Shown here: piece after piece, positions 2,150-63,542 of the stretch | How positions within the stretch are numbered: the stretch's first letter is position 1 | Layout of the letters: every line of letters begins with the position of its first letter | IMG/VR virus record: IMGVR_UViG_3300013233_000093 | Coordinates: 62,001-126,000 of that record | Length of the DNA stretch: 64,000 bases | Reading direction: 5' to 3' (one strand) | Program-made: the position numbers and the translations under genes | Notes under the pieces: generated by a model | Seen by the model: the letters and a program-made list of their open reading frames with translations, nothing else | What the model was told of the DNA's origin: nothing | Databases searched by the model: none

Positions 2150-2184
2150 GTCTATACAGTACCGCACTGCGGTACTGTATAGAC
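2150..2184. terminator. Perfect 17-bp inverted repeat followed by TTATGTC and a T-rich tract
   Basis: gtctatacagtaccgca-c-tgcggtactgtatagac. Confidence 0.75.
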
Positions 2185-2198
2185 TTATGTCTTCTTTT

Positions 2199-2318
2199 CT
2201 CTATTTCTGTGTTCGTCGTAATTATCGGTCTATATTACTTTAGTGATACTTAGGTAATAATACTTAGGTGCACTGTTATAACTAATAGATCTCTAATATG
2301 AGATCAAAGGATTTAAAG
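2199..2318 (+). repeat. Type-A cassette leader, copy 1 (TATATTAC early-promoter core at 2231-2238, two leader hairpins, SD)
   Basis: Near-identical to 36423-36542 and 59423-59537; TATATTAC matches the phiKZ early promoter motif. Confidence 0.9.
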
Positions 2319-2576
2319 ATGAAACTGATTAAAGAATTCTCGTTTGGCGATAAATTTTGCTATAACCACGAGACCGGCTCTGTCGAAGTCCTCGACTTCG
2401 ACAACGAGGTGCTGGCTGAGGTTAAGTTCCCAGCAGATCCATTGATAACCACCATCGAGGTGGTGTCCCCGGGCACGCGGATCATTAAGGGGGTCATTCA
2501 CAGCGATCCATACTGGCTGTGCGTACCAAACCCAGGCGAAAACGCCGGGGAGGGGATATACGAGCTACCGACATAG
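2319..2576 (+). CDS. Small early protein, MKL(I/V)K…IYE family (85 aa)
   Basis: AAAGGA SD before ATG 2319; same start context as the paralogous cassettes. Confidence 0.8.
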   Translation: MKLIKEFSFGDKFCYNHETGSVEVLDFDNEVLAEVKFPADPLITTIEVVSPGTRIIKGVIHSDPYWLCVPNPGENAGEGIYELPT

Positions 2577-2587
2577 CTCGTATATCC

Positions 2588-2620
2588 CCTCCCCCTTCGG
2601 GGGAGGTTTTCTTTTTTTTT
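2588..2620 (+). terminator. Intrinsic terminator of cassette 1
   Basis: cctccccc-ttc-gggggagg followed by a long T tract; near-identical in cassettes 2 and 3. Confidence 0.85.
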
Positions 2621-2664
2621 TCAGTCCATGAGGTATTGCATGTACTAGACAGGAGTGATAAGAA

Positions 2665-4854
2665 ATGAATGTAAATCCGTTTATAAGAGAAGCCAAAGAG
2701 TATGTACGCACGCTGGACATCGTCGGTGAATACGTAAAAAACCAAACCACGTACATCTCCACGGTTACAGGAGATGCACCAGAGAAAGTAGAGTCTTTCG
2801 TAAAGGAACACATCGAACCTAAGTCCCCCATGATGCGTGTGTTGAAAAAGATACCTGGAGGCGATCGCGTAAAGGCCACTCAAGATCTTACTTCGTTCTT
2901 AAGTGAGGCAGATCACACAGGACGTTTTGTAAGCCCCAGTCTCGTGATGTATGAAAACCCTAAAAAGGAAGTCAGCTTCATCTCAAAGTTTGCACAGCAA
3001 GGCATGGATGCTCGTGACATACTTAAGGATAAAATGAAAGACGCTCGTGCTAACAAGGATAAAGAAAAGACCACGTTCTATCATAATGCACAGTGGTCTA
3101 AAAAGATCCTGAATAACATCATCTCCGGTGCAGGATCGTCGCCTTATAATCCCATCTACAATGCCAGTACACACACCACGTTGACATCCACGTGTCGTTG
3201 TGCTACTTCTTATTCCAACGCCACATGTGAGAAGTTCCTGGCGGGTAATCGTCATTACTACAATGAAGAGATTACTTTGTCAGACATGGCGGGACTTATT
3301 CGTATTACTGATTTAGTAAAGCTGGAGGCAGCTATGACTAAATACAAGTTGGATTATCCCACTCCAGAGTTCTTATATGGACACATTGTAAGATCTGTAC
3401 GTAAGTATTGGCGTAGAGCGGATGACAATTACGCAACTGTAAAAGAGTTCATCTTTGCGATGTCTCCTATTCAGAGAGCGGCAGTGGCATTTGTGAGTGA
3501 CTTGGAAGCACTATACCAAGTAAACCCTAAGTTCGTAGCTACAATGTTTAACACCATGTCTACGCCCACGACACACGAAGTCAAAGATCCTGACAAGTAT
3601 GTAAAGGCAATGAACGAAGAGATGGTAAGTCACGTAGGCTTGGTAATGAAACGCGTAGTAAACCATCGTAGGATCTTTAAGTTCAAACAAGAAGATCCTA
3701 AAGGGTACGCGCAATACGCAGGTTTTGCCGAGCACATGTTTAAAGCCTTGGATTACTACGGAGACTTTATACGTGCCACGCTGGTGACCGACTCATTGCC
3801 ATCGGGTATATATGCGTATCTGTTTTCGTTGCGTGATGTAGTGGTGGTGTCTGATACCGATTCCACGATCTTCACTACGGACGACTGGGTACAGCGTTTA
3901 GGTGACGGTTCTTCCTTTAGTGACCTAGGCGTATCCGTAGGCGCCACAGCTACGTTCTTGTTCTCATCTCATTTAGCACATAACCTGGCGCTGTTATCCA
4001 GACACTTAGGTGTACAAGATGATAAACTCTTTATGCTTACTATGAAAGGTGAGTTTTATCAGCCTGTGTTGGGCGTGACCAGTATGACCAAGCATTACTT
4101 CTCTTACACAGGAGCTTGTGAAGGCGATGTCTACGAGAAGTACGCGTTTGACGTCAAGGGTGTAAATCTTAAGAACTCTACACATCCTAAGGAGCTAACT
4201 GAGGGCAATGCTGCGTATATTAGACTGCTGATGGATGCAGTAGTGGAAGAACGCAAACTGAGTATGCTGGAGATCATGGAACTACCCATGCTAGCCGCTA
4301 ATAAGGTACGCCAGTCGCTGCTTGCGGGAGAAACGAAATATCTAACAGGACGTGAGGTAAAGCCCGCCACCGCGTACAAGAATCCAGACTCGTCCGTCTT
4401 TATACAGAAGAAGCTCTGGGATACCGTGTACGGCAAGGAACTTGGTCTAGCCGATACACCTCCTTATCGTGTGGTAAAGGTACCGCTGGTATTTGGACCT
4501 AGTAAAGCTAAGTTCGAATCGTGGCTACTTACACTACCCGATGAAAAGCAAGAGTTGTTCCGCAAGGCGTTGTCGCAAGCAGGCAAGACCTCCCTTACTT
4601 CGATATACCCACCACATGCAGTGGTAAACGGAGTGGGTGTGCCAAAAGAGTTGGTGTCTGTAATGGATATTGGTAAGTATGAATGCGAACTCATGACGGG
4701 CTATCTATCCGTGCTAGAGACCATTGGCATATTCATACGCAATAACAAGAATACACGTCTGTTGTCACAGGAGTTAAACTGGCAGACGTTTGTGGATAAC
4801 GGCAGTAAGCAATGGAACTTCATGGATCCTAAATTACAACTAGAGGCGGTGTAA
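2665..4854 (+). CDS. Split family-B DNA polymerase, subunit carrying motifs B and C (phiKZ gp50-like)
   Basis: KKILNNIISG (motif B-like), VVSDTDSTIF (motif C), TKHY and KGV; no exonuclease or motif A in this ORF. Confidence 0.88.
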   Translation: MNVNPFIREAKEYVRTLDIVGEYVKNQTTYISTVTGDAPEKVESFVKEHIEPKSPMMRVLKKIPGGDRVKATQDLTSFLSEADHTGRFVSPSLVMYENPKKEVSFISKFAQQGMDARDILKDKMKDARANKDKEKTTFYHNAQWSKKILNNIISGAGSSPYNPIYNASTHTTLTSTCRCATSYSNATCEKFLAGNRHYYNEEITLSDMAGLIRITDLVKLEAAMTKYKLDYPTPEFLYGHIVRSVRKYWRRADDNYATVKEFIFAMSPIQRAAVAFVSDLEALYQVNPKFVATMFNTMSTPTTHEVKDPDKYVKAMNEEMVSHVGLVMKRVVNHRRIFKFKQEDPKGYAQYAGFAEHMFKALDYYGDFIRATLVTDSLPSGIYAYLFSLRDVVVVSDTDSTIFTTDDWVQRLGDGSSFSDLGVSVGATATFLFSSHLAHNLALLSRHLGVQDDKLFMLTMKGEFYQPVLGVTSMTKHYFSYTGACEGDVYEKYAFDVKGVNLKNSTHPKELTEGNAAYIRLLMDAVVEERKLSMLEIMELPMLAANKVRQSLLAGETKYLTGREVKPATAYKNPDSSVFIQKKLWDTVYGKELGLADTPPYRVVKVPLVFGPSKAKFESWLLTLPDEKQELFRKALSQAGKTSLTSIYPPHAVVNGVGVPKELVSVMDIGKYECELMTGYLSVLETIGIFIRNNKNTRLLSQELNWQTFVDNGSKQWNFMDPKLQLEAV

Positions 4855-4860
4855 CTAAAT

Positions 4861-4908
4861 CACATACAGATCAGCTCCGTAAGGAGCTGATCTTATGTCG
4901 TATATTAC
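4861..4908 (+). repeat. 48-bp hairpin-TATG element upstream of head paralogue, copy 1
   Basis: cacatacagatcagctccgtaaggagctgatcttatgtcgtatattac; also at 6559-6606 and 29434-29481. Confidence 0.9.
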
Positions 4909-4925
4909 ATTTAGAGGATAGTAAG

Positions 4926-6527
4926 ATGGATAGTCGTGTGGTGGGTGAGTTGGAGTATGCTGAGTTGGTGTTGGATGGGGTGCTTAGTGGTCGTGTTATT
5001 AAGATCTATGAGGAGTCTGATAGTATTGCCGGTATGCTTTGCCTAGACAAAGACCGTGTGAAGTGGGTGTCTGGCGATAGCATCGCTGCAGACACTGTAG
5101 CAGGCATGCAGTTTATAGGACGTGCTTTTAAGGCTGTGTGGCGGCTCATAGTCCGTGCAGTCATGGCGGTAGTAAGTGGTCTTAAAAGACTCTGGGAGTG
5201 GCTTACCGGAGGCAAGGGCAGTACTAACCCTGATACTCCTGGTGCTACTTATCAGGATACACCTACTCCAGTAGGAGGTAAGATAGGTAAGCAAATGGCT
5301 CGTGAGGATAAGGCCGTCGTAGAGACTGCACTCATCGTAGCAGAGCTAGAAGAGAAGGGCGTAGATATAGAAAAGGCAGTAAGCGAAGTCACTCCTGAGA
5401 TGTTAGAAGCAGCACATCGCGAGAATAATACTCGGGACGAAGCACGGATATCTAAAATAGAGAAGGACGCGGAGGACGCTGAGGAGTTCAACAAGCGTGA
5501 GCGCGAAAGGTTAGACGGCATCACATCAAGGTTTAACGCAACCGCCAAGCAAGAAGCCGCTAATAAAAAGGAAGCCGAACGCATCGCAGCAGCAGATAAG
5601 GAGGTGAGGGAACGCGCAGCAGCAAGGGACGATGCAAGGATTAACGTATTGCGTAAACAACGCAGCGGGTTCACTCGTATAAAGATCACCAATGCCATAC
5701 GCGCCGCATACGCAGAAGAAGTTGGAAAAATCGAGAATAACGCAATCTTAACTTCCGGCGGCATAGACAAAGATAAAATGCGAAGAGCTGTGTATAAGGC
5801 GGCGTCAGGAAGCCAAAACATAAGCCGTATAGATCTAGCTGACTTGCGTTTTAATATTAAAGAAGTCGCTACAAACGGGCCGTCTACCGAGCGGACAAAG
5901 AGGGATGTTGGAGATGCATATAAACGCCTTATTGCTAAAGTTGTACTGCGTACAACCGAGAACGTGTACGAGATTTTTAATATGCCGGAGGGCTACGCGA
6001 GCGCGTTAATCGACGGCATGGTTGATGGCGTGGATGAAGATGAACTGGGCGGTGCGTTAGTATCACCCGACACCGGCGGGGGTAGAGTATTTACACTGAC
6101 CATGGGACGTACGGGCAAGCACACACCGAAGTTTACACTAGCCGTCACCTCACCCAGTACTCCGCCTACGTTGGAACACCTCGACATACCAGGCTTTAGC
6201 GCGGTCAGTGAGGAAATGCAGGAATATCACGAACATGTTTCCAAAACGTCTAAGGCATTCGAGCCGGCGCAAAAGCAAATCCTCGCTAAAATAAAGAAAG
6301 CGCTTAGAGTGCTGGACGAAGAAGCTTCTGCGTACAAGGATCATCCAGACGTGGAAAACATCCACTCCGTTATAGAATCCATAGGAAACGAGTATGCAAA
6401 CGTAACCAAGGCATTAAAGTTTGTAACGCATATCCTGAACGGTTACCAAGATGCGTACACATCCAGAGCCACATTGGCTAGGGAAATCGTGGGATTAGTA
6501 ATAAATAGCCCATCCCGGGAGAAGTAA
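4926..6527 (+). CDS. Inner-head/inner-body paralogue family protein with conserved leader (533 aa)
   Basis: Propeptide ending TVAGMQ, then amphipathic FIGRAFKAVWRLIV…LWEWLTGG helix as in the phiKZ gp93-type family; paralogous to 6622 and 29497. Confidence 0.7.
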   Translation: MDSRVVGELEYAELVLDGVLSGRVIKIYEESDSIAGMLCLDKDRVKWVSGDSIAADTVAGMQFIGRAFKAVWRLIVRAVMAVVSGLKRLWEWLTGGKGSTNPDTPGATYQDTPTPVGGKIGKQMAREDKAVVETALIVAELEEKGVDIEKAVSEVTPEMLEAAHRENNTRDEARISKIEKDAEDAEEFNKRERERLDGITSRFNATAKQEAANKKEAERIAAADKEVRERAAARDDARINVLRKQRSGFTRIKITNAIRAAYAEEVGKIENNAILTSGGIDKDKMRRAVYKAASGSQNISRIDLADLRFNIKEVATNGPSTERTKRDVGDAYKRLIAKVVLRTTENVYEIFNMPEGYASALIDGMVDGVDEDELGGALVSPDTGGGRVFTLTMGRTGKHTPKFTLAVTSPSTPPTLEHLDIPGFSAVSEEMQEYHEHVSKTSKAFEPAQKQILAKIKKALRVLDEEASAYKDHPDVENIHSVIESIGNEYANVTKALKFVTHILNGYQDAYTSRATLAREIVGLVINSPSREK

Positions 6528-6558
6528 CGCGAATGTACGTGGCTTCGCTTAACTAAAT

Positions 6559-6606
6559 CACATACAGATCAGCTCCTTAAGGAGCTGATTTTATGTCGTA
6601 TATTAC
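6559..6606 (+). repeat. 48-bp hairpin-TATG element, copy 2
   Basis: Two mismatches relative to copy 1. Confidence 0.9.
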
Positions 6607-6621
6607 TTAGAGGACAACAAG

Positions 6622-8121
6622 ATGGATGTGTATGGTGAGTTGGAGTATGCTGAGTTGGTGTTGGATGGTGTGTTGAGTGGTAGGGTGAGTCAGATCTATG
6701 AGGAGTCTGATACTATTGCTGGTATGATGGGTATGTGTGGTGATAGAGTGGAGTGGGTGTCTGGCGACTCCATAGGCGCAGACACTGTAGCAGGCATGCA
6801 GTTTATAGGTAAGGCAATCGGGGCAGTTTGGAACTTGATCTGGAACGCCATTAGCGCAGTGCTGATAGCTATAGCTAAATTATTCATTTGGTTGTTTACA
6901 GGCGGCAGTCCTGGTAAATCGGGTATAGCGGGCACGATCTATGAAAAGAAGATCACGCCCGCAGGTGGCTGGTTTGGCAAGCGGCAGGTGAAAGAAGATT
7001 ACCATGCGTTACGCATGCGACGACTAGCCGAGCACTCAGTGGCCGTAAATAACCTTACAGCAAGTCTTATTGAACCGGGTAATGCGATAAAGAAGGAACT
7101 CGCTTCTGCGAATGAACTGATTAAACAGCTAGACAAGATTAAGAAAGATCAAGATGCTGACAATAAGACGCTTGACAAGATGACCGACGATATGAAAGCC
7201 TTGCTTAAAGCCCAGGCCGACGAAAAGAAAGATATAGTTTCAGGCAAGACGGTAGCTGTTAACACACCCGCGAAGTCTGATTTCTCAGCCACCATTAAGG
7301 TTACCGATGAGTTGCGCGAAGCGTTCAAGTCGGATTTCGAATACTTGGATAAACATGCAGTGGCCAATAAGGGCACTGTAAGACCAGAAGAAAACCGCAA
7401 GGTAATGCATGACCTCACAGGATTTTCAAAGAAGGCACTGACTGCCGCAGGGGCATTAAAGGACATTCCAAAAGACTTTGACCGCATTATAAAATCCATC
7501 GAGGCTAAGAAATTCGAGAGTGCCGGTAAAGATCAAAAGGCGTTGGTTGATAAGGTGTCTTCTGTGTCAACTGGCATTGCTAACGCAGTCGGACTTGACC
7601 TCGATAATGCAGGTGAGATAGCCCGGTACGCGGATAAACGTGGGGGTTTGTCAAGCACAGATCTAGGTGGCGGCAAGTTTGTGCGGGTGTCTAGCGAAGA
7701 AATAAAAGCCATTCCCGGTCTTTATACATTCAGCGTTAGTGTCATAGAACCCAAAGACATCATCAAAGTAAAACAGCTGATAATCGAAAAGGGCGACTTT
7801 GACGAAGATGTAATAAGCAAGCGTCATCAAGATATGGCGAAGGATTTAAAGATCCACGCAGATGGCTTTGAAGCAGTTAAAAAGCTCGTTAAGGAAACTA
7901 ACGATAAGCTGACCGCTTACACAAAGGGCATGGAAAAAGACGGAGACGTTCCGCTTAGCCCTCTTTTACGTGCAGTCGGTAATAACGTCAAGGAGTACGT
8001 TAACACATACCCTAAGTTATCCAAGGTACTTACTCAGATAACGACGGCAATGCAGCACGATGGAAACATTAAACTTGGTTTACTGTCCGCCATAGCGGCA
8101 GATGGTAAGAAGGATAAATAA
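6622..8121 (+). CDS. Inner-head paralogue family protein (499 aa)
   Basis: GELEYAELVLDGVLSGRV…DTVAGMQFIG leader shared with 4926 and 29497. Confidence 0.7.
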   Translation: MDVYGELEYAELVLDGVLSGRVSQIYEESDTIAGMMGMCGDRVEWVSGDSIGADTVAGMQFIGKAIGAVWNLIWNAISAVLIAIAKLFIWLFTGGSPGKSGIAGTIYEKKITPAGGWFGKRQVKEDYHALRMRRLAEHSVAVNNLTASLIEPGNAIKKELASANELIKQLDKIKKDQDADNKTLDKMTDDMKALLKAQADEKKDIVSGKTVAVNTPAKSDFSATIKVTDELREAFKSDFEYLDKHAVANKGTVRPEENRKVMHDLTGFSKKALTAAGALKDIPKDFDRIIKSIEAKKFESAGKDQKALVDKVSSVSTGIANAVGLDLDNAGEIARYADKRGGLSSTDLGGGKFVRVSSEEIKAIPGLYTFSVSVIEPKDIIKVKQLIIEKGDFDEDVISKRHQDMAKDLKIHADGFEAVKKLVKETNDKLTAYTKGMEKDGDVPLSPLLRAVGNNVKEYVNTYPKLSKVLTQITTAMQHDGNIKLGLLSAIAADGKKDK

Positions 8122-9253: not shown

Positions 9254-9395
9254 GGTAAGTTCCAGGGGTAAGTTCGGCGTCATAGAATCGCATAAAAGTT
9301 TAGAACGTGTGCTATAGTTATGTATAACAACGAATGCGCAAGCGTTCGTCAGTACCAGCGTATATTTAACGGACGTAAAAATACGTTTCACCGTT

Positions 9396-9421
9396 TATTC
9401 AAAACTATATCACTATTATGA
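9396..9421 (+). promoter_or_regulatory. Type-B early promoter TATTCAAAACTATATCACTATTATGA upstream of chimallin
   Basis: Exact 26-mer repeated five times in the window, always upstream of a gene start; contains a TATAT(C/T)AC core. Confidence 0.8.
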
Positions 9422-9496
9422 TACACAGCTTGTGTGTCATACGAAGTGTTATACTCGAGTTAACACTTATCACTTACGAAGAAAGGAAGTAAAAAG

Positions 9497-28373: not shown

Positions 28374-29432
28374 ATGCAATCAGTAGTGGTCACCAAAGCC
28401 CTGGACGTGATACAGGCATGTGCAGAACACAACCAGTTTAACGAAGTCACAGGGCTGAAGAAAATGATCCGGCTTATTCCGGGGGCAGAGTTAAACGCAT
28501 ACGTGGCGTTGCGTATTCGGGATGCGATTAAACTGTTCAGTCCCAGCATCGATTTCTACGTATACTTCTACGGAGATATCAGTCTGCACGACTTGTGCGC
28601 GTATTCATTAGTGCCATCTGAAAATCGCTTTATAGGTAAAGACGCGATCCTGTCATTCGAGACTTCCCATCGTACGTTTAAAGACGTGGAGTTTAGTAAT
28701 TTTGCTGCGTATGCTTCTCTAGATGACGATGTCACCTCCAGAGCTCTGTCAGCGGCCGCTATGGGCTTTAACTACCCAGCAGAGACCTTACGCAAGTTCG
28801 CAGTGAACTCCATTGCTACGGGCGCTAAGGAGCTCCTTAATGAAGGCATCTTCACGCGTTACATTGGCATACACGAGCCACGTTTTAACGAAGTCACAAT
28901 GCTAGATAAAGAACGCACTGCCTCCGACCTAATTATACCCAGTAGCGAGCATAACTGGTATATCGACGGGGAGATCACACCGGATGTCTGTGCTGACACA
29001 TTACAATGGCTGGAGTCTGTAAGGTCGTCCGGTGATACGGAAGTGACCATTTGGTTTAACTCGCCACACAACACGCATATGAAAGACGGCATGTTGCTGG
29101 CATCTATCTTTGAGTCTGTGAACTTAAAGATCGTGGGCATAGCAGCTGGTGAATTAGCTGGTGGGTCTGTAATGGCATTTGCTGGTTGTAATAACGGTGA
29201 TCGTTTGACGCTTACTAATACGGAGTTTCTGTTGTCTCCGTACAAGATCGATCAATTGACCAGTCGGCAATCTGACTTGTTAAAACATATACAAGCCGGT
29301 AAGTTATGGTACGAACGTCTGGCTAAGTTTACATTAAACAAGAAAGACGCCTTACGTGACGTTTTAAATCAAGAACCAAGGATCTTAGGTTCTGACATCA
29401 TTAACTACGGCATTGCAGATGCAATGATTTAA
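28374..29432 (+). CDS. ClpP-like protein with two tandem domains; catalytic residues apparently lost
   Basis: C-half follows the ClpP pattern (YIDGEI, IWFNSP, G…A…AG, DR, YGIAD); N-half shows a weaker second copy. Confidence 0.65.
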   Translation: MQSVVVTKALDVIQACAEHNQFNEVTGLKKMIRLIPGAELNAYVALRIRDAIKLFSPSIDFYVYFYGDISLHDLCAYSLVPSENRFIGKDAILSFETSHRTFKDVEFSNFAAYASLDDDVTSRALSAAAMGFNYPAETLRKFAVNSIATGAKELLNEGIFTRYIGIHEPRFNEVTMLDKERTASDLIIPSSEHNWYIDGEITPDVCADTLQWLESVRSSGDTEVTIWFNSPHNTHMKDGMLLASIFESVNLKIVGIAAGELAGGSVMAFAGCNNGDRLTLTNTEFLLSPYKIDQLTSRQSDLLKHIQAGKLWYERLAKFTLNKKDALRDVLNQEPRILGSDIINYGIADAMI

Positions 29433-29433
29433 C

Positions 29434-29481
29434 CACATACAGATCAGCTCCTTAAGGAGCTGATCTTATGTCGTATATTAC
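29434..29481 (+). repeat. 48-bp hairpin-TATG element, copy 3
   Basis: One mismatch relative to copy 1 (4861). Confidence 0.9.
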
Positions 29482-29496
29482 CTAAAGGATAGTGAG

Positions 29497-31053
29497 ATGG
29501 ATAGTAGTATGGTGAGTGAGTTGGAGTATGCTGAGTTGGTGTTGGATGGGGTGCTTAGTGGTCGGGTTATTAAGATCTATGAGGAGTCTGATAGTATAGC
29601 TGGTATGCTTTGCCTAGACAAAGACCGTGTGGAGTGGGTGTCTGGCGACTCCATAGGCGCAGACACCGTAGCTGGCATGCAGTTTATAGGTAGAGCTTTT
29701 AAGGCTGTATGGCGTCTGATAGTCCGTGCAGTGATGGCGGTAGTAAACGGCCTTAAAAGACTCTGGGAGTGGCTTACCGGAGGTAAGGGCAGCACTAATC
29801 CGGATACTCCTGGTAGTGTGTATGAAGAGAAGCCCACTCCTGTGGGAGGAGTCATAGGCAAGGAAATGGCTAAGGAAGACAAGGCTAACGTAGAGACCGC
29901 GCTCGCCGTAGCAGAGCTAGACGAGAAGGGAGTGGATATAGAAAAAGCGGCGGAAGAAGCGGCAAGACAAGACGCCGCCAAAGTTGAACGTCGTAAGGCT
30001 GAAGCTGCCGAGGAGGCCAGACGTCGTAAGGACGGGGCGCGTGCAGCGCGCGATAAACAGGAGGCTGAATCAAAAAGGATCAATGATGAACGTATGGCCA
30101 GGGAAGAAGAAGAGGCCAAAATAGCACTGAAGCGTCATCGCAAGGAAGCACTGGCCGCAGAACTAAAAAGGAAGGAAGAACTGCTGCAACGAGCTAGGAA
30201 ACTCGACGGGCTATCGTTCACTATTGAAATACCTGACACGATGAGAGTATTTAAACAGTCTGATATTGCCAGCATAGAGCGAGACGCCATTATAACGGAA
30301 AATCGCGTCGATTATGAAACCATGCGGTCATACTTAGCTAAGTCTACTGAAGCAATCATTGCAATGGGCGATGCCGGGCTGAAGTATTTGACGTTAGGCG
30401 TAGCCTCGTTGTATCGGGCATATCCACAAGACGGCGAGTTTACCGATAAGACACGCGATAGTATAAACAGTGCCATATCGAATGTAACCGATGGCTACGT
30501 AAAACATGCAGCCAACACACTGCGCGTATTATTGCATGGTCATGAAAAGACATACCGCACCAGCCTTGTGGTTGGCGAACGCATGACCGGAAACATGGGC
30601 GGGGGCGATGCGTATCTGGTAACGGTTAGCGCAACGCCTGTAGATGGACAGCTGTCCGTGACATCATCCCTTGTGCCAGCTAAGACAAGACCTGCGCTTA
30701 AATATGTAATGTTTAATGGCACCGAGCTGTCAAATAAAAATATGGTGGACTCGCATTACGAGACGAGGGTGTACGTCAGAGACTTAAATCAGGCCAGCGA
30801 GGCACAAGCTGAAGCACTCGCGGATGCCATCCGCGAGTTTAACGGTTACGTAAAGAAGTTAGACGGCAAGCCGGGTGCTGAGGTTATCACGGACGTTATT
30901 AAAAATGTGATATCGCTAGGAACCGTGGGTGGTACTGCAATAGGCAATGTCGTAAAGCGCCTGTCGAAGTATCAAGCAGCGACCGCAAACGAAGCTGTGT
31001 TCCGCAAAGACTTGTTTATAAACATATTAGACAACGAACCCATGCCCAAATAA
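29497..31053 (+). CDS. Inner-head paralogue family protein (518 aa)
   Basis: First ~150 aa highly similar to 4926; TVAGMQ followed by an amphipathic helix. Confidence 0.7.
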   Translation: MDSSMVSELEYAELVLDGVLSGRVIKIYEESDSIAGMLCLDKDRVEWVSGDSIGADTVAGMQFIGRAFKAVWRLIVRAVMAVVNGLKRLWEWLTGGKGSTNPDTPGSVYEEKPTPVGGVIGKEMAKEDKANVETALAVAELDEKGVDIEKAAEEAARQDAAKVERRKAEAAEEARRRKDGARAARDKQEAESKRINDERMAREEEEAKIALKRHRKEALAAELKRKEELLQRARKLDGLSFTIEIPDTMRVFKQSDIASIERDAIITENRVDYETMRSYLAKSTEAIIAMGDAGLKYLTLGVASLYRAYPQDGEFTDKTRDSINSAISNVTDGYVKHAANTLRVLLHGHEKTYRTSLVVGERMTGNMGGGDAYLVTVSATPVDGQLSVTSSLVPAKTRPALKYVMFNGTELSNKNMVDSHYETRVYVRDLNQASEAQAEALADAIREFNGYVKKLDGKPGAEVITDVIKNVISLGTVGGTAIGNVVKRLSKYQAATANEAVFRKDLFINILDNEPMPK

Positions 31054-36386: not shown

Positions 36387-36388
36387 CT

Positions 36389-36422
36389 ATATAGACTATC
36401 CCGTAGTGGGATAGTCTATATG
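36389..36422. terminator. 14-bp hairpin ending in TATG
   Basis: atatagactatccc-gtagt-gggatagtctatat. Confidence 0.7.
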
Positions 36423-36542
36423 CTCTATTTCTGTGTTCGTCGTAATTATCGGTCTATATTACTTTAGTGATACTTAGGTAATAATACTTAGGTACGTTGT
36501 TCTAAACTATTAGATCTCTTATTAGAGATCAAAGGATTTAAA
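36423..36542 (+). repeat. Type-A cassette leader, copy 2 (TATATTAC at 36455-36462)
   Basis: First ~70 nt identical to copy 1. Confidence 0.9.
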
Positions 36543-36782
36543 ATGAAATTAGTAAAAGAGTTCGAAAATGTCACACATGTGATTTTCAGTGGTACCGATC
36601 TCTTTGTCATGATGTGCGACGGCGAGGAAGACACCAGTGGTAATCTTCCACTTCCCACTGGTGTCTGCGAGCGGTTCACACTGTCAAGCCATGGCATGAC
36701 AGTCGAGTTTTCAGGCTCTAAATACGAATACATCGCCGAAACCGACGAGGAGTCGGGATGGGTAGGGATCTACGAGAAGTAG
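36543..36782 (+). CDS. Small early protein, MKL(I/V)K…IYE family (79 aa)
   Basis: MKLVKEF…WVGIYEK; AAAGGA SD. Confidence 0.8.
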   Translation: MKLVKEFENVTHVIFSGTDLFVMMCDGEEDTSGNLPLPTGVCERFTLSSHGMTVEFSGSKYEYIAETDEESGWVGIYEK

Positions 36783-36788
36783 ATCCCG

Positions 36789-36821
36789 CCTCCCCTTCGG
36801 GGGAGGTTTTCTTTTTTCTTT
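36789..36821 (+). terminator. Intrinsic terminator of cassette 2
   Basis: cctcccc-ttcg-ggggagg followed by a T tract. Confidence 0.85.
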
Positions 36822-36837
36822 ATTAGGACTCGATAGA

Positions 36838-36895
36838 TATTCAAAACTATATCACTATTATGATGGACAACGTGTTGTTGTCTTTAGACTAGAAG
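36838..36895 (+). promoter_or_regulatory. Type-B early promoter plus leader hairpin (gacaac-gtgtt-gttgtc)
   Basis: Exact 26-mer plus a leader shared with 56545 and 62768. Confidence 0.8.
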
Positions 36896-53104: not shown

Positions 53105-54334
53105 ATGGCCATCAGACGACCTGGTGCAGCGGCGTCTACGGACGCACCTGCCACAATAAAAGAACGAGACATTGTAAGTGCAGCGCATTACAGTGACGCA
53201 GATAACACGACACGATTGTTAAACGACCTGGAGGGAGATCACTTTGTCACCAAAGCCTGGTATGGACAGCTACTTGTCACCGGGACAGAACCCAGATCGC
53301 TAGACACCACAATCGACGCCACCTTACAGCAGTATGAAAAGGTGATGGAGTTACGACTTGTCATTCAAGATGCCGTATCGTTCTCATCTGACTTACAGAC
53401 GGGATCCTACGAGACCACAGGAGAAGCGTACATCTTCCCAGGTACCGTCACACCCATCGTCGGAGACATGTTTGTCGCATCACTGTCTCCAGCACAGGAA
53501 GCGGTCTTCACAGTCACATCTGTAAACTCACTGTCTGTGTATAAGAGACCCGCATACCAGATCGAGTATAAGGTCTGGGGTGTAAACGATGACATAGCCA
53601 CAGCGAACCTGGAGACAAAATCAGTAGCGCATTACTACTTCTCTAAGGAACGTTTCGTTCGTGGCGATTCCCCAATCGTCACGTATACAGAAGCCAATCG
53701 TGCTGTAAATTACACCGCCACGATCGAGCGCTTAGTGCGGGACATGTACGATCGTTTTTACGATCACGAGAACCGCGTGTTTGTCTATACCCAAGATGAT
53801 CTGTCCATTTACGATCCGACTGCATGTGAGTTCTTTAATGCGATCGTTCCAAAGGCTTTGCGAGCAGGTCGACCTAGAGTGGTAAGCTATGCGGATGGGT
53901 CCCATCCTGCGTATATAAAACGTCCTTCTTTATGGCGTGCACTTATACAACGCAGCTCATACAACATGCATCGTTTTCCAAGAGCGTACTTGCCGGTGAG
54001 AACGGGTGAACTGGCTAAGGCGGAGATTTGGTACAGCATCTCCATGACACAGCTTGATTACATTATGCTGCCCGACACCACCACTCTGGATGGCGCTACC
54101 GCAGATAAGCCGTACGTCGTCAGTAACGAGTGCTATGAAGGCACTGGAGTTACCGATAAGTTCGAGGACGCCATCTTATCAATGATAAGCAATCAGCCTA
54201 TCGACGCACAGGTAATCCTAGATGCCATTAATGCATTGGATGTCACAGACGCAGAGTTACCCGAGCATCGCCGTTTTTACAAGACTATATTACTATTATG
54301 CATGTTAGTCTTTAACTTGCATGAAATCCAATAG
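53105..54334 (+). CDS. Virion structural protein (neck/head-closure-like)
   Basis: LEG…YGQ, QQY, PIVGDMF and YDP motifs. Confidence 0.65.
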   Translation: MAIRRPGAAASTDAPATIKERDIVSAAHYSDADNTTRLLNDLEGDHFVTKAWYGQLLVTGTEPRSLDTTIDATLQQYEKVMELRLVIQDAVSFSSDLQTGSYETTGEAYIFPGTVTPIVGDMFVASLSPAQEAVFTVTSVNSLSVYKRPAYQIEYKVWGVNDDIATANLETKSVAHYYFSKERFVRGDSPIVTYTEANRAVNYTATIERLVRDMYDRFYDHENRVFVYTQDDLSIYDPTACEFFNAIVPKALRAGRPRVVSYADGSHPAYIKRPSLWRALIQRSSYNMHRFPRAYLPVRTGELAKAEIWYSISMTQLDYIMLPDTTTLDGATADKPYVVSNECYEGTGVTDKFEDAILSMISNQPIDAQVILDAINALDVTDAELPEHRRFYKTILLLCMLVFNLHEIQ

Positions 54335-56479: not shown

Positions 56480-56529
56480 GCGCACATCACACATGGCAGT
56501 GGCCATGTGTGATGTGTCTTTTCTTTTTT
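56474..56529 (+). terminator. GCATA-hairpin with T tract
   Basis: cacatcacacatggc-agtg-gccatgtgtgatgtg followed by tcttttctttttt. Confidence 0.75.
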
Positions 56530-56544
56530 GCTGTGTTGACTAAA

Positions 56545-56603
56545 TATTCAAAACTATATCACTATTATGATGGATAACGTGTTGTTGTCTTTAGACTAGA
56601 GGT
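56545..56603 (+). promoter_or_regulatory. Type-B early promoter plus leader hairpin
   Basis: Exact 26-mer at 56545-56570. Confidence 0.8.
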
Positions 56604-56610
56604 TTATGCG

Positions 56611-56886
56611 ATGAAATTAGTAACGACGTATCCCCATGCAGATAATTTTTGGCTTAATAACGCGGAACGTGTACTGCAACTACGAACGCCGGGCATGTCG
56701 GAAACACACCTGCTTATGTTTACAGCAGAATACATTGAACGGGCGTGCGGAACTGCACATGCATTGGGACACCTAGACCCAATAAAGGCGGTGTTGTACG
56801 TACCGGGCGCAGAGTCGCCGTGCAACTGTGTCCTTGCAGTAGCCACCGACAAAGGCGTGTTTATTTACGAGAAGCTGTCCGACTAA
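56611..56886 (+). CDS. Small early protein, MKLV…GVFIYE family (91 aa)
   Basis: GAGG SD; same termini as the type-A cassette proteins. Confidence 0.75.
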   Translation: MKLVTTYPHADNFWLNNAERVLQLRTPGMSETHLLMFTAEYIERACGTAHALGHLDPIKAVLYVPGAESPCNCVLAVATDKGVFIYEKLSD

Positions 56887-59422: not shown

Positions 59423-59537
59423 TATTTCTGTGTTCGCCGTAAATATCGGTATATATTACTTTAGTGATACTTAGGTAATAATACTTAGGTACACTGTTCT
59501 AACTTAATAGATCTCTAAGAGATCAAAGGATTTAAAG
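59423..59537 (+). repeat. Type-A cassette leader, copy 3 (TATATTAC at 59452-59459)
   Basis: Few mismatches relative to copies 1 and 2. Confidence 0.9.
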
Positions 59538-59807
59538 ATGAAATTAGTAAAAATGATCGAAGCATGTACTTCTGTCCTGCATGTAGAATTTGATACCGTG
59601 TTTGACGTGATCCGTATTGAACGGAATGGTGTTCCGTGTGGTGTCTTCGAATTGGGGTTTACCCCCAACGTTAACGGCGTCGGTAACCGGCTTAACCTCG
59701 CCGACGGGGTTAAAACACAATACATCGCCAACCCCCACGGCGATGCTTCCGTCCTTGTCATGGACACCCCAACCGGGGTATTCATCTACGAGATCCCCTG
59801 CGAATAG
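59538..59807 (+). CDS. Small early protein, MKL(I/V)K…IYE family (89 aa)
   Basis: MKLVKMIE…TGVFIYEIPCE. Confidence 0.8.
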   Translation: MKLVKMIEACTSVLHVEFDTVFDVIRIERNGVPCGVFELGFTPNVNGVGNRLNLADGVKTQYIANPHGDASVLVMDTPTGVFIYEIPCE

Positions 59808-59817
59808 GGGATCTCGG

Positions 59818-59854
59818 CCTCCCCTTATCGGGGGAGGTTTTCTTTTTTCTTTTT
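59818..59854 (+). terminator. Intrinsic terminator of cassette 3
   Basis: cctcccc-ttatcg-ggggagg followed by a T tract. Confidence 0.85.
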
Positions 59855-60499: not shown

Positions 60500-62683
60500 A
60501 TGTCAAGACTTGACTCTACAATCAGTTACGATGCAGCAGCAGACTGCATTTTAACCATCGACCAGACCCTGCGCGCCAAGGAAGATATCTATGGCGAAGA
60601 TTTGGCTGCATCCGTAGCTGGCATGCAGTCCCTGGGTAACGCTGACTTCGCTGACGTGAAAGCCACTCATGACGCCACCACCGACATTTTGAACGTCGCT
60701 GGTTTGCAACAGTTGCTTGTTGATGAGTACGGTGCTGATAATAAAGAAGCCATCCGTATCGGTATGGAAGCAGCCAGCATTCAAATGATGGTTTCTGGCG
60801 GCATGGAAATGGCCACCAACACCCCTGACGATTTGCCTAACCTTGAAAAGGGTACCGTGGTACTGGCAGCAAGCGATGTGGTTCCTGGTTTGCAAGCATT
60901 CCAAAACCAAGATCTTGGTGAATACCGCGCTACTGCCATTGTGATGGCAGGTTTGACAGCTGCTTCTGGTAAAGCCGATGAGCTGTTCTATCCAACCAAA
61001 GTTGTGGAAGCCGGTGCACAGGGACGTAGCGTTTCAGTTCGTATCCCTTACGTGTACAAACGTACCCTGAAATCCACCGACGGTTCCCCAATGGAAATCG
61101 CCATGACCCCTCTGATGGGCGCCATGGAAGATCACACCATTTTGGAAGCAGACATCCTGAAACTTCTGCCTAATGCAGACAACACCGCTAACTCAGCTTA
61201 CTTGGTTGATCCAGCAGTGGTTCCAAATGAAACCATCGTTGTAGATGGCATTGACGTCAACACACGTCCCATCGTTTTCGGTAAGAAGACCGATCTGATT
61301 TCTTTGTCTGGACACACCGGATTGCTTGGTTCTGCAGCACAGTCTGAAACCGACACCATGTCTACCTTGGTAAACTTGGGTCACGTCTGGGCTAAGATCA
61401 GTACCAGTACCACAGACGCAGCAGGCGCCACTGTGGTAAAATCCAGCATTGTTAAGTTCCGCGTAGACGGCACACCTGGCTCTACCTTTACTCGTCCTAG
61501 CGAAGGCAAAGACACCGACCTGTCCATGCTGTACACCGAATCATTGATGCTGGGTGGCGAAGTCACTGGTATCGACGGCGTTACAATTACAACTGCAGGT
61601 CTTGGTATCGACGGCTTGATCGCTGCCGGCGGCAAAGCTTGGACCATTCAGTTGCCTGTCCGTATTTCAGGTTCTTGCAACTTTGAAACCTCCAACATCA
61701 TCGTTGACGGCACCGCTATTGATCTTGGTAAAGTGTTCATCGGTGATACCGAAGTGGCACAGTCCAGTGCTGAATACACCGCACTGAAAGCAGCTATGAC
61801 TTTGGAATTGATCGGCTATCGTCCGTTGGCTACTCGTACCAACAGCACTTTGCGTCAAACCGGTACTCTGATCGACATGGGCACTGCGCGTAACTACTTC
61901 TTTGAAGTGCGTCCTGGTTCTCCTGTTGCTACCCGTAAACCTTCTGGTCCTTACGTCGGTGGTGGTGCAAACTTGGATTACATGAAGAAAGCGCTGCGTA
62001 CACGCACCTCTAACTCCACTGTGACCAACATCCTTGCACAAGAACAAGCGATCATCTACGCAGCAGCCAACAGCGCTCCTGTCGGTGGATCCACCACCAT
62101 CGGTGGAATGTATGTGCGTCCTACCTATTTGGTAGACAACATTGACGCTGCACTGAACGTCGTCTTCCAAAACTCCATCGCCATTGTCGAGAACTTGCGT
62201 TCTGTGATGTACAATGCAATGGGCGTGATGGCTGACACCATGGCCATCAGTTCTGGTTACATCACTGCACTGGGCGAGTTCCCACAGGGCGAGCAAGAGT
62301 ATGACATCATCGCCATCTGCGATCCTCGTCTGGCTCCTTTGTTCATGCGCTCCGGTGACGAACGTACTCTGGGTGCAAACAACAACTTGATCGTCGCATC
62401 GCATTTGGACAAGCGCATGCGCGGTAAAGTATTGTTTTCATTCTCACGTCGTAAACGTGCAGGCGATTCCCAGATTGATCCATTGAGCTGGGGTGCTCGT
62501 TACGTTAAGCCACCTATCGTGCATACCGCGAAAGGCATTGTGCGTAACGATGCGATCTTAGATGAGATCCATGTATTGCCACAAGAGCATCACATCAACG
62601 TGTTGCCTATCCTGGGACGTATCAACGTCACCAACTTAGAGACTGTGTACAAACACATCTCTAAAACTACTGCACCTGCTTAA
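60500..62683 (+). CDS. Major capsid protein precursor (phiKZ gp120-like)
   Basis: ~727 aa; ELFYPT…V, TRP, LIGY…TNSTLRQTG, DP…LF.R.GD.RTLG and LPILGRI motifs; propeptide with G-x-Q sites; strongly biased codon usage. Confidence 0.92.
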   Translation: MSRLDSTISYDAAADCILTIDQTLRAKEDIYGEDLAASVAGMQSLGNADFADVKATHDATTDILNVAGLQQLLVDEYGADNKEAIRIGMEAASIQMMVSGGMEMATNTPDDLPNLEKGTVVLAASDVVPGLQAFQNQDLGEYRATAIVMAGLTAASGKADELFYPTKVVEAGAQGRSVSVRIPYVYKRTLKSTDGSPMEIAMTPLMGAMEDHTILEADILKLLPNADNTANSAYLVDPAVVPNETIVVDGIDVNTRPIVFGKKTDLISLSGHTGLLGSAAQSETDTMSTLVNLGHVWAKISTSTTDAAGATVVKSSIVKFRVDGTPGSTFTRPSEGKDTDLSMLYTESLMLGGEVTGIDGVTITTAGLGIDGLIAAGGKAWTIQLPVRISGSCNFETSNIIVDGTAIDLGKVFIGDTEVAQSSAEYTALKAAMTLELIGYRPLATRTNSTLRQTGTLIDMGTARNYFFEVRPGSPVATRKPSGPYVGGGANLDYMKKALRTRTSNSTVTNILAQEQAIIYAAANSAPVGGSTTIGGMYVRPTYLVDNIDAALNVVFQNSIAIVENLRSVMYNAMGVMADTMAISSGYITALGEFPQGEQEYDIIAICDPRLAPLFMRSGDERTLGANNNLIVASHLDKRMRGKVLFSFSRRKRAGDSQIDPLSWGARYVKPPIVHTAKGIVRNDAILDEIHVLPQEHHINVLPILGRINVTNLETVYKHISKTTAPA

Positions 62684-62698
62684 GGTATATTAGTGACT

Positions 62699-62752
62699 TA
62701 CACCCACAGGCTTTACGGCCTGTGGGTGTATGCCGTCTTTTCTTTTCTTTTC
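62699..62752 (+). terminator. Terminator after the major capsid gene (hairpin, TATGCCG, T tract)
   Basis: tacacccacaggc-tttacg-gcctgtgggtgta. Confidence 0.8.
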
Positions 62753-62767
62753 CCTGTGTTGACCGTT

Positions 62768-62815
62768 TATTCAAAACTATATCACTATTATGATAGATAA
62801 CGTGTTGTTGTCTTT
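62768..62815 (+). promoter_or_regulatory. Type-B early promoter plus leader hairpin
   Basis: Exact 26-mer at 62768-62793. Confidence 0.8.
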
Positions 62816-62840
62816 ACTTTAACCAAAGAGAAATAGAATT

Positions 62841-63478: not shown

Positions 63479-63490
63479 ATTTTCACCGTT

Positions 63491-63516
63491 TATTCAAAAC
63501 TATATCACTATTATGA
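63491..63516 (+). promoter_or_regulatory. Type-B early promoter
   Basis: Exact 26-mer. Confidence 0.8.
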
Positions 63517-63542
63517 ATGATTAATCAATTGGGATTCTTTTA

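Follow-up and report, generated by a model that had tools for sequence, protein, structure and literature searches.

The early genes of the jumbo phages phiKZ and 201phi2-1 are preceded by AT-rich motifs centred at about -10 (PMC7598289; PMC11512511; PMC8244752). The early promoter consensus of 201phi2-1 is TATATTACDWHDGTG, and the phiKZ core is alike (PMC7058600 table 2). Promoters of this type stand in many copies per genome before small hypothetical genes, start transcription about 7–10 nt downstream of the core, are active immediately after infection, and are read by the virion polymerase in phages that have their own split multisubunit RNA polymerases. The typical phiKZ 5' untranslated region (UTR) is 31–40 nt long (PMC8244752), and TATG is the motif of the phiKZ late promoters (PMC7598289). 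In T4-like phages, repeated composites of about 100 bp, the promoter/stem-loop elements (PeSLs), combine an early promoter, stem-loops and a Shine-Dalgarno (SD) sequence and accompany ORFans (PMC2839356, PMC4122927). Within dense hyperplastic regions, one and the same composite PeSL stands on either side of the ORFans, and neighbouring elements can excise mini-circles (PMC2839356). The moron of lambdoid phages (Juhala/Hendrix), as PMC2839356 sums it up, is one gene that carries a promoter and a terminator of its own. Here we analysed a stretch of 64,000 nt (the window), positions 62,001 to 126,000 of the 222,906-bp IMG/VR contig 3300013233_000093, which came from a microbial mat sample. Three loci of the window, A (2199–2620), B (36423–36821) and C (59423–59854), each carry a common leader, one small open reading frame (ORF) and a terminator. 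We consider it likely that these loci are moron-type, monocistronic and insulated early transcription units, which the phage has built from its own stereotyped regulatory parts.

The leader is the best conserved part of the three units. A 39-mer that opens with TATATTAC and closes with the second TACTTAGGT is exactly repeated at 2231, 36455 and 59452, where 0 occurrences are expected by chance, and the leaders of about 120 nt are 88–93% identical in pairwise comparison (z about 19–20 against shuffles). The alignment of A, B and C runs from about 30 nt upstream of TATATTAC through about codon 7, and resumes at the last few codons as far as the T-run. The first-pass annotation had described a shared leader at three loci, with leader hairpins, stop-codon hairpins and a common terminator, and each of these features was found in its place. 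The number of leaders had to be revised. A search of the whole genome, which the annotation had proposed as a check, revealed further copies, and pattern scans of all IMG/VR gave six in total, all on the source contig; the three additional copies (D, E and F) are located outside the window on other genes. When a covariance model of the UTR was run on about 300 kb including relatives, the same six copies only were obtained, and no leader was found in the relatives at 45–55% identity. Since the leader also heads three unrelated genes, it is a shared expression or regulon module, and not part of one gene.

The promoter at the head of the leader fits the phiKZ type. The 15-mer TATATTAC-TTTA-GTG is exact in five of the six copies and matches the published 201phi2-1/phiKZ early promoter consensus (PMC7058600), as had been proposed for TATATTAC from the sequence alone. 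The element CTGTGTTCG, located about 16 nt upstream in place of the T-rich or -20/-30 elements of phiKZ and 201phi2-1, is likewise unchanged in five copies and reads ATGTGTCCG in copy F. Because the known early motifs are centred at about -10, the predicted start falls on or near the final G of the 15-mer, and the virion RNA polymerase would read the leader promoters from this position. The same 15-mer also stands in promoter-like positions on other contigs of about 220 kb. Eight TATATTAC sites were found, three of which (4901, 6599 and 29474) lie 16–17 nt before the ATG of paralogs of about 500 amino acids, just after TTATG, and these three are probably not early promoters. A second family of promoters, which we call class II, consists of CTGTGTY (in most members), a spacer of about 16 nt and CTATATCAC-TATTATG, after which a GGAYAAC..GTTGTC hairpin is usually present. 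The sequence read contains at least nine members, among them those upstream of the chimallin-like gene and PhuZ. Since the class-II promoter ends in TATG, it may be read by both polymerases, and since copy F has a promoter of this form, F may be timed differently from the other copies.

Downstream of the predicted start, the conserved block differs from the phiKZ and 201phi2-1 early units in that it continues through a transcribed leader of about 75 nt into the first codons, nearly identical in the six copies. All copies fold in the same order, a TACTTAGGT hairpin (hairpin 1), an A/U-rich linker, a GATCTC/GAGATC hairpin (hairpin 2) and the SD sequence, and the z values of the predicted folds against shuffles are -2.1 to -4.1. 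The first 27 nt of the RNA would form hairpin 1 from the quasi-palindromic TACTTAGGT repeat, and would be followed by the spacer, the 6–7 bp hairpin 2, an unpaired SD sequence and an A-rich start. A, C and E have the SD sequence and the start codon unpaired in their predicted folds; the minimum free energy folds of B and D have the SD region partly paired and some extra pairing in the linker. The calculated stability of hairpin 1 is -8.5 kcal/mol on the sense strand versus -1.9 on the antisense strand, and because G.U pairs are needed, the hairpin forms in the sense RNA only. A C-to-U change in the class-II leader retains its pairing as G.U. The strand-specific stability, together with this retained pair, points to a role at the RNA level. 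Across the six copies the hairpin-1 arms, the hairpin-2 stems and the SD sequence never vary, nor does the promoter (apart from the class-II form in F), whereas the hairpin-2 loop has five variants of 3–6 nt and the linker varies. Such a pattern of invariant promoter, stems and SD sequence beside a variable loop and linker is the footprint of selection.

The position of hairpin 1 is common to most TATATYAC promoters of this genome. Its stem starts at nt 1–5 of the predicted transcript, as counted from an unmapped start site, and at 13 of the 14 TATATYAC promoters a hairpin begins within nt 1–6 of the predicted transcript, formed by five unrelated hairpin sequences. On other jumbo-phage contigs of about 220 kb (L139, L156/L175, L132 and L169), the 15-mer TATATTACTTTAGTG is directly followed by strong hairpins of unrelated sequence; the strongest hairpins after the 15-mer tend to be on contigs of this size, but the trend falls short of significance (p = 0.054). 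Early transcripts of chimalliviruses may more widely begin with a hairpin.

The phi10 promoter, gene 10 leader and Tphi of T7, known from the pET cassette, form a high-expression unit with a promoter for the phage polymerase, a stem-loop at the 5' end of the RNA, a strong ribosome binding site free of structure and a strong hairpin terminator, and the ompA leader is a 5' stem-loop that stabilises mRNA. The layout is similar here, and there is no sequence relationship to either. By the position of hairpin 1 relative to the predicted start, the leader hairpins would serve in the protection of the 5' end and in efficient, insulated initiation of translation.

Each unit would end with a hairpin across the stop codon and a GC-rich intrinsic terminator. 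A CCTCCCC..GGGGAGG sequence with a T-run is found at 2587, 36787 and 59818 (0 expected by chance), so arranged that the GC-rich hairpin directly precedes the T-run as in an intrinsic terminator, and the 3' modules of A, B and C are 78–81% identical (z 6.5–7.4 against shuffles). The succession of stop-spanning hairpin, GC-rich hairpin and T-run exists in A, B, C and E, with the stop hairpins made from different sequences, and copies D and F have other terminator types. By sequence and fold, therefore, each of A, B and C has its own promoter, UTR, single ORF and terminator, and the earlier description of self-contained units is upheld. Terminator hairpins also form sequence families, for example ACAGTACCGCAxTGCGGTACTGT and TATAGACTATCCC..GGGATAGTCTATA (window 2150–2184, the L005 minus strand near 1665, 36388–36421 and L196:4672–4706). 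These families recall phiKZ and 201phi2-1, in which terminator motifs are reported to be conserved.

The proteins of A, B and C belong to one family, with conserved termini and diverged interiors, as the first-pass annotation had stated for these ORFs of 79–89 amino acids. By BLASTP, the common parts are MKL[IV]KEF and the C-terminal IYE region only, and the ORF interiors align at 51–58%, as shuffled controls do (z -1.0 to 3.7). We found a fourth member, G, which starts with MKLV, ends with GVFIYEKLSD, and shares 9 of 14 C-terminal residues with C (E = 0.002), with synonymous codon differences and unrelated flanks. From these properties, the conserved termini are a feature of the protein, which makes true paralogs of A, B, C and G. 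Because G is on a different leader, the leader, the ORF and the terminator are separable parts; the sets of leader, ORF family and terminator overlap and are not co-extensive. The annotated frames score best for codon preference, and the GC content of the ORFs is 0.48–0.52 versus 0.484 for the genes of the window, so that their composition is native. The public gene call for ORF A has 92 amino acids, starting at an ATG in the hairpin-2 loop and not at the SD-proximal ATG at 2319. The loop variant of A and D holds this ATG, which in A (2298–2300) is in frame with the ORF.

Word-indexed and full HMMER searches, which covered 5.8 billion clustered proteins and 1.8 billion representatives, returned no homologs of the ORFs beyond the three query proteins themselves. 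A match to a 2902-amino-acid Ig-repeat adhesin was judged spurious, as it aligns via repeated beta-strand segments. The proteins of A–G gave no families in Pfam and PHROGs, and the ESM Atlas gave no usable lead on the function of the ORFs. An AlphaFold model was all-beta with a mean predicted local distance difference test score of 54, too poor for a fold search. Each unit would thus encode one small, putatively all-beta ORFan of a family of at least four paralogs, the interiors of which have diverged beyond recognition; a role in host takeover or anti-defence, which had been suggested for them, is a guess. We infer the start site, the early timing, the polymerase used, the functions of the hairpins, the level of expression and the function of the proteins.

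Table 1. Features of the units and related elements. Positions with an L prefix are outside the window; all others are window positions.
Feature	Position	Strand	Remarks
Terminator-type hairpin of upstream 268-aa gene	2150..2184	+	5' boundary of unit A; similar ones before B, D and F
Upstream element CTGTGTTCG of A	2207..2215	+	About 16 nt before -10-like box; from alignment
Early promoter core TATATTAC-TTTA-GTG of A	2231..2245	+	Predicted start at about G2245
Leader hairpin 1 of A	2245..2271	+	10–11 bp stem from two TACTTAGGT repeats, two G.U pairs; predicted RNA 5' end; from fold
Leader hairpin 2 of A	2288..2305	+	GATCTC/GAGATC stem; from fold and alignment
Shine-Dalgarno AAAGGA of A	2306..2311	+	Unpaired in predicted fold; 7 nt before ATG
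ORF A	2319-2576	+	85 aa; MKL[IV]...IYE family; codon score best in this frame
Stop-codon hairpin of A	2547..2594	+	21-bp form overlaps terminator 5' arm; from fold
Intrinsic terminator of A	2588..2621	+	CCTCCCC/GGGGAGG stem and T-run; repeat family D8
Terminator-type hairpin upstream of B	36388..36421	+	Identical to hairpin upstream of leader copy F
Upstream element and early promoter core of B	36431..36469	+	TATATTAC at 36455
5' UTR of B	36469..36542	+	Hairpin 1 36469-36495, linker, hairpin 2 36513-36530, SD 36531-36536; covariance model R1, 99.7 bits
ORF B	36543-36782	+	79 aa
3' end of B	36765..36821	+	Stop-spanning hairpin 36765-36787, terminator hairpin 36788-36807, T-run; from fold
Upstream element and early promoter core of C	59428..59466	+	TATATTAC at 59452; divergent region beside dnaB
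5' UTR of C	59466..59537	+	Hairpin 1 59466-59492, linker, hairpin 2 59510-59524, SD 59525-59530; covariance model, 97.4 bits
ORF C	59538-59807	+	89 aa
3' end of C	59789..59854	+	Stop-spanning hairpin 59789-59816, terminator hairpin 59817-59838, T-run; from fold
Fourth paralog G	56554..56886 (ORF 56611-56886)	+	91 aa; class-II promoter/leader TATATCAC-TATTATG and GGAYAAC hairpin; without CCTCCCC terminator
Leader copy D	L001:1470-1597		Heads 76-aa membrane protein
Leader copy E	L005:2226-2351		Heads 289-aa protein with N-terminal membrane segment
Leader copy F	L196, about 4700-4831		Heads 134-aa protein
Second (class-II) promoter/leader family	9387-9433, 36829-36886, 54267-54313, 56520-56593, 62743-62816, 63482-63528; L001:4956; L002:1413, 2231; L196:4741

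By its divergent DNA polymerase, DnaB, capsid, RNA polymerase, PhuZ and chimallin-like genes, the source phage is a phiKZ-like, nucleus-forming chimallivirus, and it shares with phiKZ and 201phi2-1 the split multisubunit RNA polymerases as judged by gene content. Family searches of the genome detected a divergent DnaB, a phiKZ-type major capsid protein, SH3DP, PhuZ and a weak chimallin match, and the RNA polymerase beta-like subunit is a match to phrog_2962. Of the core-gene neighbours named earlier for the three loci, the DNA polymerase gene at 2665–4854 and the divergent dnaB were confirmed, as was a gene for an RNA polymerase beta-like subunit, which may belong to the virion enzyme. The DNA polymerase is about 33% identical to those of chimalliviruses of Vibrio, Xanthomonas, Erwinia and Pseudomonas, and no metagenomic protein exceeds 45% identity to it; the closest relatives are at 45% identity for the DNA polymerase and 55% for DnaB. 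A megablast search of GenBank phages with 6 kb gave no match, and IMG/VR searched with DNA polymerase peptides returned the source contig only. The same metagenome contains a second chimallivirus, L220 (Ga0172420_10000008, 204 kb), with a DnaB 53% identical.

We compared the junctions at which A and C are located with those of the relatives. At site A, SH3DP and the DNA polymerase abut in one relative (L008) and are separated by a different ORF of 71 amino acids in another (L007), and here a 268-amino-acid ORF and unit A lie between them. At site C, the junction of the divergent dnaB, an ORF of about 150 amino acids and the capsid gene is 87, 120 and 342 nt long in three relatives, versus 529 nt here with unit C; the 87–120 nt spacing between dnaB and the ORF belongs to L219 and L221. 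The 342-nt spacer at the homologous junction of L220 (5659–6000) has an uncalled ORF for a membrane peptide of 41 amino acids on the dnaB strand. By this comparison, A and C were inserted specifically in this lineage, each at a junction of core genes. They resemble lambdoid morons in their own promoter and terminator, as judged by sequence and fold, and in the insertion between genes adjacent in relatives. Classical morons, however, have no conserved flanks common to copies and often a deviant base composition, whereas the flanks of the present units form a repeated family and the base composition matches that of the genome; in this presumably lytic phage, the genes would be expressed early in infection and not from a prophage.

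The leader copies have recombined with each other. The leaders of A, B, D and E have 22 quartet-informative sites, which fall into four perfectly contiguous blocks. Nine sites in the upstream promoter region group A with B and D with E (AB/DE), five in the linker support AE/BD, three in the hairpin-2 loop support AD/BE, and five at the SD sequence and start support AB/DE again. The three groupings are mutually incompatible, and the permutation probability of so few runs is at most 2e-5. Copy F is chimeric, with the upstream terminator hairpin of B, a class-II promoter and the linker of A/E. Together, the incompatible blocks and the chimeric F demonstrate short-patch gene conversion among dispersed copies. 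An assembly artefact was ruled out, as the copies differ and have unique flanks. Purifying selection and gene conversion together explain why leaders about 90% identical stand beside fully diverged ORFs. In the contigs of the source sample, the depth over the leader (2229–2312) was 28 versus 2–10 in the flanks, which means that it is multicopy. Further leader variants were found among these contigs, with another linker, with other downstream sequences, or with an E-like upstream flank with three changes, in neither the source contig nor IMG/VR. The same mat thus harbours related strains or phages in which additional units carry the leader.

How far this recombination extends is the point at which the explanation as mobile cassettes has to be weighed. 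Under it, as in PeSLs or integrons, the leader and the terminator would serve as homology arms, and whole ORFs would be swapped between loci or co-infecting phages, possibly via circles. The recombining leaders, the presence of one leader on four unrelated ORF types and of one ORF family on two leader types, the homology that at either end enters the ORF by a few codons, the empty junctions of A and C in relatives, and the sample contigs with leader variants on other sequences all agree with such exchange. Like PeSLs, the units would be transcriptionally insulated, and their copies recombine. PeSLs, however, are one intergenic element of sigma-70-type promoter and stem-loop terminator, read by the host polymerase, whereas the promoter here is of the phiKZ type, the conserved stem-loops belong to the transcribed leader, and the terminator hairpins upstream are not the same from copy to copy. 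The two flanks of a unit are also different sequences, so that a single unit has no bounding direct repeats and cannot loop out in the manner of PeSLs. In the window, the copies are single, 34.2 and 23.0 kb apart among core genes, with short gene-conversion patches only; crossovers between them would be lethal deletions, since DNA polymerase, RNA polymerase and capsid genes lie between. There is no dense array or hyperplastic region and no empty leader-terminator frame, the contigs of the source sample revealed no joint, and no circle junction was seen, nor any ORF swap, for which there is no close relative to compare. Finally, the termini are conserved at the protein level in G despite unrelated flanks, and thus are not only a recombination footprint, and the composition of the ORFs is native. 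We regard mobile cassettes as unlikely, and the PeSL mechanism put forward by the first-pass annotation is not supported for these loci. Its wider proposal of a modular recombining system survives in part: leader patches recombine and parts are reassorted, whereas nothing shows the movement of genes as cassettes or the exchange of whole ORFs. A related reading, in which the leader and terminator are a dedicated scaffold of nucleus-forming jumbo phages, appears improbable to us. In it, the 5' hairpin and the GATCTC hairpin would be an RNA signal that tags a small regulon of immediate-early mRNAs for vesicle export, protection or priority translation, or else PeSL/integron-like homology arms would convert and diversify the hypervariable MKLV...IYE effectors in a lineage independent of the host polymerase. 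Targeted hypermutation by a diversity-generating retroelement would produce conserved ends and hypervariable interiors; since template and variable repeats stay about 90% alike, while these interiors are no more alike than shuffles, and no template repeat was found among the repeat families, its probability is negligible.

Several points weigh against the reading of A, B and C as insulated early units with a functional leader RNA. The sole metatranscriptome run of the mat sample contained nothing from the cassette region. The directly read sequence amounts to about 105 kb of the 223-kb genome, the leader count coming from exact-pattern scans, and the junction comparison covers sites A and C. 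In A only, the stop hairpin (2547–2606) is lengthened to 21 bp, as GGGGAGGGG of the ORF pairs with the terminator's 5' arm. Competition between this long hairpin and the terminator may leave the DNA polymerase gene incompletely insulated, and the predicted sequestration of the terminator arm might permit read-through into that gene. All stems of the leader are invariant, with no compensatory covariation within it. The arms of hairpin 1 are exact direct repeats of 9–10 nt, an identity that a hairpin does not need and that leaves room for a protein-binding operator. In that case the TACTTAGGT repeats (period 14, about +3 to +27) would be a DNA operator, not an RNA hairpin, at which a phage or host regulator co-regulates the six units, for example in early shut-off, and their location just downstream of the start would fit a roadblock. 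A tandem version, with a 25-nt exact match to hairpin 1 as a 14-nt tandem repeat, exists in a metagenome-assembled genome of Thalassotalea sp., a marine gammaproteobacterial genome (L218:6810-6845, JBELHO010000057.1), about 60 nt upstream of a minus-strand operon of three genes. This match could be chance, a shared protein-binding site or a hint of the host, and was treated as a lead only. The other TATATYAC promoters have unrelated inverted repeats at the same position without direct repeats, the stability of hairpin 1 depends on the sense strand through its G.U pairs, and the variable spacing of the arms favours a hairpin over a DNA site for a dimer; an operator thus seems to us a rather weak candidate. 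A leader that senses a ligand, temperature or protein, or that is a small-RNA gene, is very unlikely. Its length of about 75 nt, roughly twice that of the typical phiKZ 5' UTR, its two conserved hairpins, and the small RNAs derived from 5' UTRs reported in 201phi2-1 (PMC11512511) would suit this explanation, but no relevant Rfam family matched at gathering or permissive thresholds, no terminator separates the leader from the ORF, and no alternative pairing sequesters the SD sequence or start in the predicted folds of A, C and E. A riboswitch was rejected, as the SD sequence is never sequestered in these three folds.

Two observations were made beside these units. A family of paralogs of about 400–530 amino acids (window 4858–6527, 6556–8121 and 29431–31053; L196:5366–6814 and 6855–8063, both on the minus strand; also window 60612–60643) has a common upstream module, in which the hairpin GATCAGCTCC..GGAGCTGATC is followed by TTATG, TATATTAC and an SD sequence. 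These paralogs and the major capsid protein have an N-terminal segment in common at the nucleotide level (repeat family D6), and the paralogs are possibly proteins of the head or inner body that share a propeptide or targeting signal. In the closest relative, a GC-rich, ORF-free and apparently structured stretch of 390 nt (L007:9208–9596) is located between SH3DP and the 71-amino-acid ORF upstream of the DNA polymerase, and had no match in Rfam.

If loci A, B and C are insulated early units of the moron type, as we consider likely, their leader and terminator would be a compact natural set of promoter, UTR and terminator parts for a jumbo-phage polymerase, and the leader copies would be a clear case of concerted evolution of regulatory DNA within a phage genome. 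So far, no new mechanism of gene mobility is revealed by them. The six co-regulated ORFans and the fast-evolving family of four members would be candidates for host takeover or counter-defence. Most transcripts from the TATATYAC promoters, which are the predicted early ones here, would start with a hairpin, and such a rule would bear on the survival and translation of mRNAs made away from ribosomes, in the early vesicle or the phage nucleus.

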